A stretch of 64,000 nt of DNA from the NCBI GenBank assembly GCA_907165135.1, contig OU015566.1, positions 13,888,001 to 13,952,000 of the forward strand, read 5' to 3'. Below are positions 62,599-64,000 of this stretch, in pieces. Position 1 is the first letter of the stretch. Each line of letters starts with the position of its first letter. Position numbers and translations under genes: made by a program. Below the pieces are notes generated by a model. That model saw nothing but the letters and a program-made list of their open reading frames with translations, was not told the DNA's origin and searched no databases. The stretch is from Oikopleura dioica. Its lineage: Eukaryota; Animalia; Chordata.

Positions 62599-64000
62599 TT
62601 AATTAACAGTATAAATGAGATTTTTGACGAGAAAAGATGTTCCTGCGTCAAAGAAGAAGGTCACATCCTGATAGGAATATTGGAATGGAGTGCTGGCATA
62701 AAAATACAAAGGGCCAGAAGAATATGCACCCGATACGTCGTAAGATCCATCCAACACGACCGTCGCATCCATCTTCAATGAATACTGAAGCACATTACTG
62801 TCAGCAGTAGGCTTCATAAGAGGTGGGCTAAGAGAACTGTGCAAAAAATCCTGAGTCGGGGAATGAAAAATCTTTGATAAAAGCCGCCTCAATTAATATA
62901 CTAGCTCTTTTTAAGCCTATCAAATAAGCTAAGCAGCTTTTCAATAAAGATCTTTTAAAAGGTGATTTTGGTTTTTTGCACAGGTTTCTGAGCCCAGGAT
63001 AAGAGTATTTATTATCTGCTGCCGTTCCCCACGGTTACCCATAATCGTCATTTGCCCAAGTTAGGCAGATGACGACTTGGGCAAATGACGACGACTTTTG
63101 TCCGTAGCGCCAGTCAAAACCCGCCTTTTTTGAAATGCAAGCTCTACCCCCTTATTAGCTCGAAAAAATACTCTTGGCTTGAGTTCCAAAGTAAAGATAT
63201 TCCAATCTCCCTGATTACAAGGCTTCTCGATAGAGTGTTGACTGTATTCCAAATTTGGCTGATTAACTGCCAGATGATATTTATAATTTGAAGGGGATCT
63301 CCATATTGTCAATACACGGTTTCCGATATTGCCCGAATCAGCTCCATTTGTGACGTATAAAATGCTTATATAACTCCCCGAAGGCATTGAATCTTCGCAG
63401 AGAACATCAACACTGATTGTGAAGTGCAGTGCAGCAGTTGACGTTCCTATTAGTTGACCGAATTGGGGCGCAACCGGAGAAGAATCAATAAACTTCCAGT
63501 AAATCTGCTTCCAATTTATAGAGCACTACCAAAATAATTTTAAATGACATCATAATAAAGTACCTCAATATCAAAAGATGAGGCGACATCAACGCGATTA
63601 GAAACTCTTCTAAATCGAAACTGAGTTGGAGAGATCAATTCTCCTCCTAGTTTCAATCCATCGTTTGTTATTCCCAGAGTTGCAAATTTTGTGAGCTAGC
63701 TGAGCTGAGCTGAGCTGAGCTGTAGCTCAGCTAGCTCAGCTCAGCTCAGCTCAGCTCAATAGTTTTTCGAAAAGAGCCAGCTCAGCTCAGCTAGCTCAAT
63801 TTTAACCTCAGCTCAGCTCAAAAATTTTCAAATATGCCCCAGCTCAGCTCAGCTCATCTCAATTTTTTTGAAAAAATTCAGCTCAGCTCAGCTCAGCTCA
63901 GCTCAATTTCGACCTCAGCTCAGCTAGCTCAGCTCAGAAAAAATTTTCAAAAATTTGCAACTCTGGTTATTCCAGAGTTTTCAAGGATCTCTATCGTCAA
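62599..64000 (-). CDS. ConA/LamG-like beta-sandwich protein, 5'-truncated by the window edge; one exon interrupted by a MITE
   Basis: Spliced reading: LTIEILENSGIT[insertion]NDGLKLGG...SSFDIE/CSINWKQIYWKF...FTISVDVLC..SILYVTNG..GNRVLTIW..GDWNIFTLELK/..YSLKMDATVV..LYFYASTPF..LVKNLIYTVN-stop. The fold call is from pattern only, and one donor is not resolved. Confidence 0.65.
63045..63091. repeat. Perfect 17-bp stem hairpin in an intron
   Basis: TCGTCATTTGCCCAAGT-13 nt-ACTTGGGCAAATGACGA. Confidence 0.85.
63674..63966. mobile_element. 293-bp MITE with 17-bp TIRs, 6-bp TSD and an (AGCTC)n interior
   Basis: TTATTC-CCAGAGTTGCAAATTTT...AAAATTTGCAACTCTGG-TTATTC; the interior is a (GAGCT)n/(AGCTC)n pentamer satellite. 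Confidence 0.92.

Follow-up and report, generated by a model that had tools for sequence, protein, structure and literature searches.

Biologists have long asked how new spliceosomal introns originate, and no animals turn over their introns faster than larvaceans. A transposon flanked by a target-site duplication (TSD) within an exon offers a clean test case: is such an insertion spliced out as soon as it has landed, and which sites does the splicing use? Here we examine a 291-bp element in the second exon of a gene of the larvacean Oikopleura dioica, close to the end of a 64-kb stretch of contig OU015566.1 (hereafter the window). O. dioica is a laboratory species for which RNA-seq is public and assemblies of several populations are available. 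Judging from its sequence signature, this is the insertion of a young hAT-type element into coding exon 2. We consider the chance about even that it represents a disruptive or at best leaky allele, recent, probably still polymorphic and possibly heterozygous. The standing of the element as an intron is no better than even on the sequence evidence.

Coordinates are those of the window, in which the element corresponds to chr1:13,951,675-13,951,965 of the OKI2018_I69 assembly, on the long arm of autosome 1. The assembly represents one male with about 3.6% heterozygosity, its haplotypes merged (PMC8008620). The genome searched (G000) comprises 64.28 Mb in 19 contigs, of which C4 is chromosome 1, C5 is chromosome 2 and C1 is the pseudoautosomal region (PAR).

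Identification of a hAT-type element

The element and its parts are as follows.

63675-63965, plus strand: non-autonomous element assigned to the hAT type (a miniature inverted-repeat transposable element, MITE), 291 bp, left end of type A and right end of type B, without an open reading frame (ORF)
63675-63690, plus strand: left terminal inverted repeat (TIR) CAGAGTTGCAAATTTT, end A, continuing GTGAGCTAGC, 100% complementary to 63950-63965
63950-63965, plus strand: right TIR, end B, which in the orientation of the gene is the 5' end of the insert
63667-63674, no strand: left 8-bp TSD GTTATTCC, the same letters as 63966-63973
63966-63973, no strand: right 8-bp TSD GTTATTCC
63692-63937: subterminal and internal pentamer arrays, GAGCT on the plus strand at the left and AGCTC elsewhere, with A/T-rich spacers (Tandem Repeats Finder and a repeat finder)

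Translation of the 291 bp gives stop codons in every frame. Matches to the 17-nt TIR sequence with at most one mismatch number at least 278 across the genome, compared to 0 for the reversed control, which implies a family of about 140 elements or more. When CAGAG is taken as the terminus, 21 of 27 and then 33 of 44 paired copies are flanked by an exact 8-bp duplication, and these duplications define the element as 63675-63965 with a TIR of 16 nt. An earlier note on this DNA had described perfect 17-bp TIRs and a 6-bp TSD, TTATTC. The arms 63674-63690 and 63950-63966 are indeed 100% complementary, but the first base varies among copies and does not belong to the TIR. Likewise TTATTC does occur outside both ends, but this parse is corrected by the family copies, which set the TSD at 8 bp. 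The product of excision is identical under the 6-bp and the 8-bp parse.

The termini of the family, CAGAG TTGCAAATTT, match the hAT consensus 5'-YARNG. Among 32 distinct TSDs we found a preference for nTnnnnAn, 18 of them having T at position 2 and 13 having A at position 7; the symmetrised frequency of each preferred base is 0.48, a moderate signal from a small sample. Family copies range from 160 bp to 1.5 kb and all are filled with pentamers whose orientation is opposite on the two halves, GAGCT/AGCTC accounting for 23-46% of each small copy examined. An 8-bp TSD, YARNG termini, the nTnnnnAn target preference and short subterminal repeats are the hallmarks of hAT transposons, as in Ac/Ds (PMC3260210). 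By the same four features, we assign the element to a hAT-type non-autonomous family, a better description than the distinct and possibly undescribed family that had been proposed for it. The (AGCTC)n/(GAGCT)n interior, first described as a satellite, is present as reported but is the normal subterminal architecture, found in all copies of the family. By analogy with the Ac hexamers (PMC3260210), these pentamer arrays are probably transposase-binding sites.

The copy at 63675-63965 carries end A (…AAATTTTGTGAGCTAGC) at the left and end B (…AAATTTTTGAAAATTTT) at the right. End B (…AAATTTTT) has just 27 occurrences in the genome and marks a subfamily. The copy shares both end types with a subfamily of about 1 kb, whose members are 92-99% identical to each other and have perfect TIRs and TSDs in nearly all cases. 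This near-identity, together with the intact TIRs and TSDs, indicates that activity was recent. We considered the 291-bp copy as a simple recent deletion derivative of a 1-kb element and rejected this origin, the alignments being gappy, only 75-82% identical and different in repeat number. Within the window it is the sole copy of the CAGAG-TIR family.

Two observations concern target choice. To the right of the TSD the exon runs on as AGAGTTTT (63974-63981, compared with 63675-63682), a target site that resembles the TIR; GTTATTCC followed by AGAGTT recurs nearly exactly at the left end as GTTATTCC followed by CAGAGTT. This resemblance could be due to chance or could hint at target choice by sequence similarity. 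Elsewhere, three copies of about 1-1.6 kb (L062, L063 and L066, at G000:C1:13768882, C1:16202891 and C2:5788489) have nearly the same TSD (TTTGGGGG, TTTGGGGG and TTTGGGAG) in different flanks, perhaps because the family favours a certain target motif or because these copies landed in a dispersed repeat.

The element interrupts a coding exon

The host gene was read on a longer stretch, L001, which reaches past the window end. Its features, all on the minus strand, are listed in the order of transcription.

near 64582, minus strand: ATG, followed by a signal peptide
intron 1, minus strand: 41 nt, GT-AG
63974-64000, minus strand: upstream part of exon 2, continuing beyond the window to 64447 (L001 position 2948), a 167-codon open frame that enters the element
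63564-63666, minus strand: downstream part of exon 2 (…NDGLKLGGELISPTQFRFRRVSNRVDVASSFDIE)
63526-63563, minus strand: intron 2, 38 nt, GTACTT…GGTAG, the frame going on into exon 3 (CSINWKQ…)
63150-63525, minus strand: exon 3, its 3' boundary approximate, a 154-codon open frame homologous to P0001 residues ~131-250
~62806-63150, minus strand: intron 3, about 340 nt
62602-62806, minus strand: last exon, its 5' boundary approximate, with the stop codon, AATAAA ~20 nt downstream, and …GAYSSGP… matching the C-terminal part of P0001

Excision of the element plus one TSD gives a continuous minus-strand frame (...LTIEILENSGITNDGLKLGG... / ...LTIEILENSGITNDGLKLGGELISPTQFRF...), as the earlier note had stated. 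Exon 2 without the element runs from 64447 to 63564 and is open over its 585 nt or 195 codons. The frame that spans the site is 203 codons long; since random positions in this compact genome reach a median of 80 codons, length by itself is not decisive for an exon.

The comparison with a relative is more informative. An exhaustive HMMER protein search identified P0001, from another larvacean contig (L049), as the best homolog with 62% identity. P0001 residues 1-90 match the upstream half of exon 2 with 61% identity, and residues 93-130 match the downstream half with 66% identity; on P0001 the two halves directly abut. At the junction, the excised ENSGIT·NDG aligns with ENNTIT·NNG of P0001 with neither a gap nor extra residues. 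L049 has neither the element nor an intron at the insertion point, and it is genomic DNA because it has a frame-shifting intron of its own at a place where the host exon 2 runs uninterrupted. The contiguity of P0001 and L049 across the site indicates that the element entered coding sequence. Taken together, the open 585-nt exon and the uninterrupted homolog bear out insertion into a genuine coding exon. An intron already present here in orthologs would have pointed the other way; L049 has none, being a relative 62% identical rather than an empty allele of the same species.

The host is a lineage-specific gene for a secreted protein. Pfam contains no family that matches any host exon, P0001 or P0002. 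The exhaustive HMMER search returned no host protein from the same species, just distant relatives of which P0001 is the best; word-indexed protein searches with exons 2 and 3 gave no match, and neither did an exact look-up of the ATG-started host ORFs as a gene caller would produce them. The exon-2 region (L001:2474-2951) matches 12 stretches of the bacterial protein P0003, which has 15 Calx-beta repeats, at 33% identity, and this similarity suggests a distant Calx-beta-like beta-sandwich in the secreted larvacean protein.

Intron 3 of the host gene is not present in the homolog L049 and holds inverted repeats of its own. One has 25-nt arms at 62824-62848 and 62972-62996 that are 88% complementary. 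A second inverted-repeat element is the palindrome 63045-63091 with 17-nt arms. The palindrome 63037-63097 consists of the back-to-back termini of another repeat family, a 56-nt unit found at more than 20 places in the genome with 88-94% identity and frequently arranged in inverted pairs with a spacing of about 700 bp.

Candidate splice sites and RNA structure

Three positions on the minus strand bear on what a transcript of the interrupted exon would encode.

63960-63961, minus strand: candidate 5' splice site, a GT in the TIR (ACC AGA|GTTGCA), last exon base 63962
63696-63697, minus strand: candidate 3' splice site, an AG (…CAGCTAG|CTCACA), first exon base 63695
63947-63949, minus strand: TGA met by read-through from the upstream exon (…GITRVANF*), 5 codons into the element

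The arithmetic proposed earlier for an in-frame GT and AG holds: joining 63962 to 63695 would remove a candidate intron of 266 nt (63696-63961) and add 33 nt, or 11 residues, to give GIT-RLTKFATLGIT-NDG. To place this pair among its competitors, we listed all G*-AG pairs around the element ends for an open frame and found 23 that preserve it. The GT at 63961/63960 with the AG at 63697/63696 is the sole GT-AG pair near the ends that is open with a small change to the protein. In the only other solution of GT-AG type, the acceptor lies in the exon, before 63620, and the net loss is 42 nt. No GT apart from the one in the TIR allows in-frame removal. The element contains about 35 AGs, of which the AG at 63697/63696 is the last; with AGs spaced 5 nt apart along the array, one or another in-frame option is to be expected. 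Every AG but this last one gives a frameshift or a TAG.

The quality of the candidate sites is poor. The donor has a T at +3, and the four natural donors that we read begin GTAA, GTAC, GTAA and GTAG. We built a splice-site matrix from 69 inferred introns, a crude model of low information, and by this measure the candidate donor ranks in the 50th percentile among all GTs of the window and in the 13th percentile among the inferred introns. The candidate acceptor scores beneath all 69 inferred introns and falls in the 14th percentile when ranked with all AGs. The exonic acceptor before 63620 scores 3.7 compared to -2.1 for the AG at 63697/63696. It should be added that 11-12% of O. dioica introns are non-canonical, with non-GT donors.

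The RNA of the element (301 nt) is predicted to fold at -152.9 kcal/mol, with z = -12.9 relative to shuffled sequences. The idea that the fold would bring the two splice sites together is correct insofar as the TIRs pair and the ends meet; both sites, however, are buried in long stems. Exact matches in the metagenome collection numbered 0 for the spliced junction and 0 for the empty-site junction.

Other copies in exons

A sister copy lies in eIF5B, a gene that is single-copy in the assembly. This 1,012-bp element (L075:1511-2522, on G000:C5; chr2:6,416,510-6,417,521) has perfect TIRs and a perfect TSD, CCCTCATC. It sits in a coding exon 2 nt upstream of the natural GTAAGT donor, in B-to-A orientation like the copy in exon 2 of the host gene. 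The GT in its TIR and its own AG would again add 33 nt (11 residues), in frame and free of stops. Alternatively, a GA donor at TIR positions 3-4 with the old acceptor would change a single residue. The B-to-A footprint consists of the 8-nt TSD, CAGA (4 nt) and a further 21 nt; the resulting 33 nt are always a multiple of 3 and are open in all three frames.

The copies in the host gene and in eIF5B, both B-to-A, are the two verified exonic copies among 44 sampled, and two candidates raise this to four of 44. The first candidate (L018:1502-2519) interrupts a 239-codon WD40-like frame and the second (L013:1277-1516) a 163-codon coiled-coil-like frame. Both are A-to-B, and no orientation bias is visible among the sampled copies. 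The interrupted frames of L018, L017 and L013 have no relatives in Pfam or in the Protein Data Bank (PDB), and a codon-usage score fails to separate known exons from chance ORFs. For the first 21 TSD-flanked copies, 33% lie in frames of at least 100 codons compared to 32% of random nearby positions, so that neither depletion nor enrichment in long frames is visible in this set. A further copy of 829 bp (L012:688-1516, G000:C1 near 4844666) lies in a frame resembling glycosyltransferase family 2 with in-frame stops through the DxD region; judged by these stops, its host is probably a pseudogene.

Disruptive allele or new intron

We propose that a non-autonomous hAT-type transposon was cut and pasted into exon 2 of the host gene, where read-through from the upstream exon would end 5 codons inside the element. 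The sole in-frame rescue with a small change, from the GT at 63961 to the AG at 63696 with 11 additional residues, would have to use poor, stem-buried sites that compete with about 35 further AGs. Because these sites are poor, buried in structure and exposed to competition, a disruptive or leaky allele appears the most likely outcome, and the insertion would be the raw material for an intron rather than an established one. Every locus that we examined is autosomal, and the sequenced animal is highly heterozygous, so the alleles may be disruptive and recessive.

Several observations weigh against a disruptive allele. Apart from the element the host gene is intact: it has a signal peptide, its exons are open, its two short introns are GT-AG and an AATAAA follows. 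The 1,012-bp sister interrupts a coding exon of eIF5B, a single gene in the assembly, in the same orientation. Exon hits that include such an important gene in one haploid assembly speak for tolerance of the insertions and are easier to understand if the elements are removed from the mRNA. The B-to-A footprint of 33 nt, in frame wherever it falls and open in each of the three frames, is a further point, as is the tolerance of O. dioica for non-canonical introns at the frequency given above. In addition, the splice-site model is crude, given its 69 inferred introns and low information, and RNA stems can be unwound.

It is possible, though on our assessment clearly less probable, that splicing already removes the element efficiently as a new 266-nt intron, which would use the TIR GT and the last AG of the array and extend the protein by RLTKFATLGIT. 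The intact host gene would fit such an intron, as would the fact that no other GT-AG pair near the ends keeps the frame with so small a change; the hairpin places both sites at the base of one stem, and the same architecture gives a stop-free, in-frame addition of 33 nt in single-copy eIF5B. Precedent exists in the hAT element Ds1, spliced from exons of maize Adh1 and wx as cited in PMC3260210, and PMC3443670 lists transposon insertion among the routes by which Oikopleura gains introns. Yet the donor with its T at +3 scores like a random GT, and the acceptor is the worst-scoring in an array that offers an AG every 5 nt and in which any other choice leads to a frameshift or a stop. Both sites lie in double-stranded RNA, and the homolog P0001 is without the 11 residues.

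A broader version of this idea extends to the family, and we regard it as tentative and rather doubtful: the CAGAG-TIR hAT family might be a working introner of a chordate, whose exon insertions, including the one in eIF5B, would be neutralised at once. The architecture serving this function would comprise the GT in the TIR, a stop-poor CAGCT array with an AG every 5 nt, the open 33-nt footprint and a hairpin that juxtaposes the sites.

Removal through other sites is unlikely. Here the TIR GT would be joined to the exonic acceptor 63621/63620 (TCTCCAACTCAG|TTTCGA, net -42 nt), or a non-canonical G*-AG pair would be used, yielding an altered in-frame protein and possibly mixed isoforms. The 23 frame-preserving G*-AG pairs, the better score of the acceptor before 63620 (3.7 against -2.1), the 11-12% of non-GT donors in the species and the GA donor in the eIF5B copy, which with the old acceptor changes one residue only, all speak for this route; such splicing would nevertheless take out or exchange exon residues that are conserved in P0001 (…NDGLKLGGELISPTQ…).

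That the insertion is an assembly or somatic artefact rather than part of the germline gene is extremely improbable: the assembly derives from long, error-prone reads with merged haplotypes, but the perfect 8-bp duplication and perfect TIRs of a genuine multi-copy family form a signature that assembly errors do not make.

Search for an autonomous partner

A source of transposase for the family had been proposed as a target for searching, and we found no hAT transposase that shares the family TIR. The stretches bounded by TIR pairs 2-7 kb apart contain no transposase ORF. One pair of B ends 5 kb apart has flanks that do not match and an interior of tandem repeats, again with no transposase ORF. 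The hAT dimerisation domain PF05699 is found in the genome in seven near-identical copies plus two weaker matches, and the family TIR is absent from the 10-kb stretches around three of the PF05699 copies.

The seven copies form a repeat in its own right (G000:C1:636914, 641782, 732634 and 737494; C5:13847453; C4:380299 and 393172; L050-L056, L058-L060). The domain match is 39 bits, the unit measures at least ~5.5 kb with a spacing of ~4.9 kb where it is tandem on C1, and the copies are 88-98% identical. No CAGAGTTGC TIR was found with these copies, on 10-kb stretches around three of them, and the repeat is probably a separate, possibly active hAT element.

Relation to known transposon-derived introns

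The closest parallel is the non-autonomous hAT element Ds1 of maize, which functions as an intron and undergoes alternative splicing when it lies in an exon, as in Adh1-Fm335 and the wx alleles (work cited in PMC3260210). Both Ds1 (~400 bp) and the O. dioica element are short non-coding hAT elements with an 8-bp TSD, short TIRs and subterminal repeats. Imprecise removal via sites in or near the element's own termini is the behaviour that the titles cited there attribute to Ds1, and in the O. dioica element it is a candidate only. The two differ in host, a tunicate rather than a plant, in TIR (CAGAGTTGC… compared to C/TAGGGATGAAA in Ds1) and in subterminal repeat (GAGCT pentamers compared to AAACGG hexamers). 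Splicing has been demonstrated for Ds1, whereas the O. dioica element is known from its DNA.

A survey of introners (Gozashti et al. 2022, PMC9860276) catalogued families in the genome of an Oikopleura sp. and includes O. dioica in its supplement. Like the DNA-transposon introners of Micromonas and Aureococcus, the present family is multi-copy, has TIRs and TSDs, occurs in coding sequence with potential splice sites of its own and resides in an aquatic host. Unlike introners, most copies of which are spliced introns, it has two of 44 sampled copies in exons (four with L018 and L013) and lacks a visible orientation bias, and its candidate removal is imprecise (+33 nt) rather than near-exact.

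Within the larvaceans, introns of Fritillaria borealis carry TIRs and TSDs that indicate descent from MITEs, and the spliceosome has become adapted so as to tolerate these introns (Henriet et al. 2019, as summarised in PMC11282704). The O. dioica element comes from the same animal class and likewise has TIRs and a TSD. The Fritillaria introns have AG-AC or AG-AT termini, with removal essentially coinciding with the borders of the element, compared to AG acceptors and G* donors in O. dioica; the O. dioica candidate is GT-AG, and the mRNA would retain the duplicated TSD together with 25 nt of element sequence. Intron gains by transposon insertion in O. dioica itself (Denoeud et al. 2010) are tabulated in PMC3443670 and involve the same species complex and the same proposed route of landing in an exon. 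The present case differs in its Okinawa lineage and in being a very young insertion.

The idea that a transposon can become an intron is thus not new, given Ds1, the introners, the MITE introns of Fritillaria and the Oikopleura insertions; what is added here is a new and very young example in a chordate. If the insertion is a disruptive allele, it would show a hAT MITE family at work today and causing mutations in a very compact genome of a chordate. If instead the family acts as an introner, intron gains that still segregate and can be dated would be present in the Okinawa population of O. dioica.

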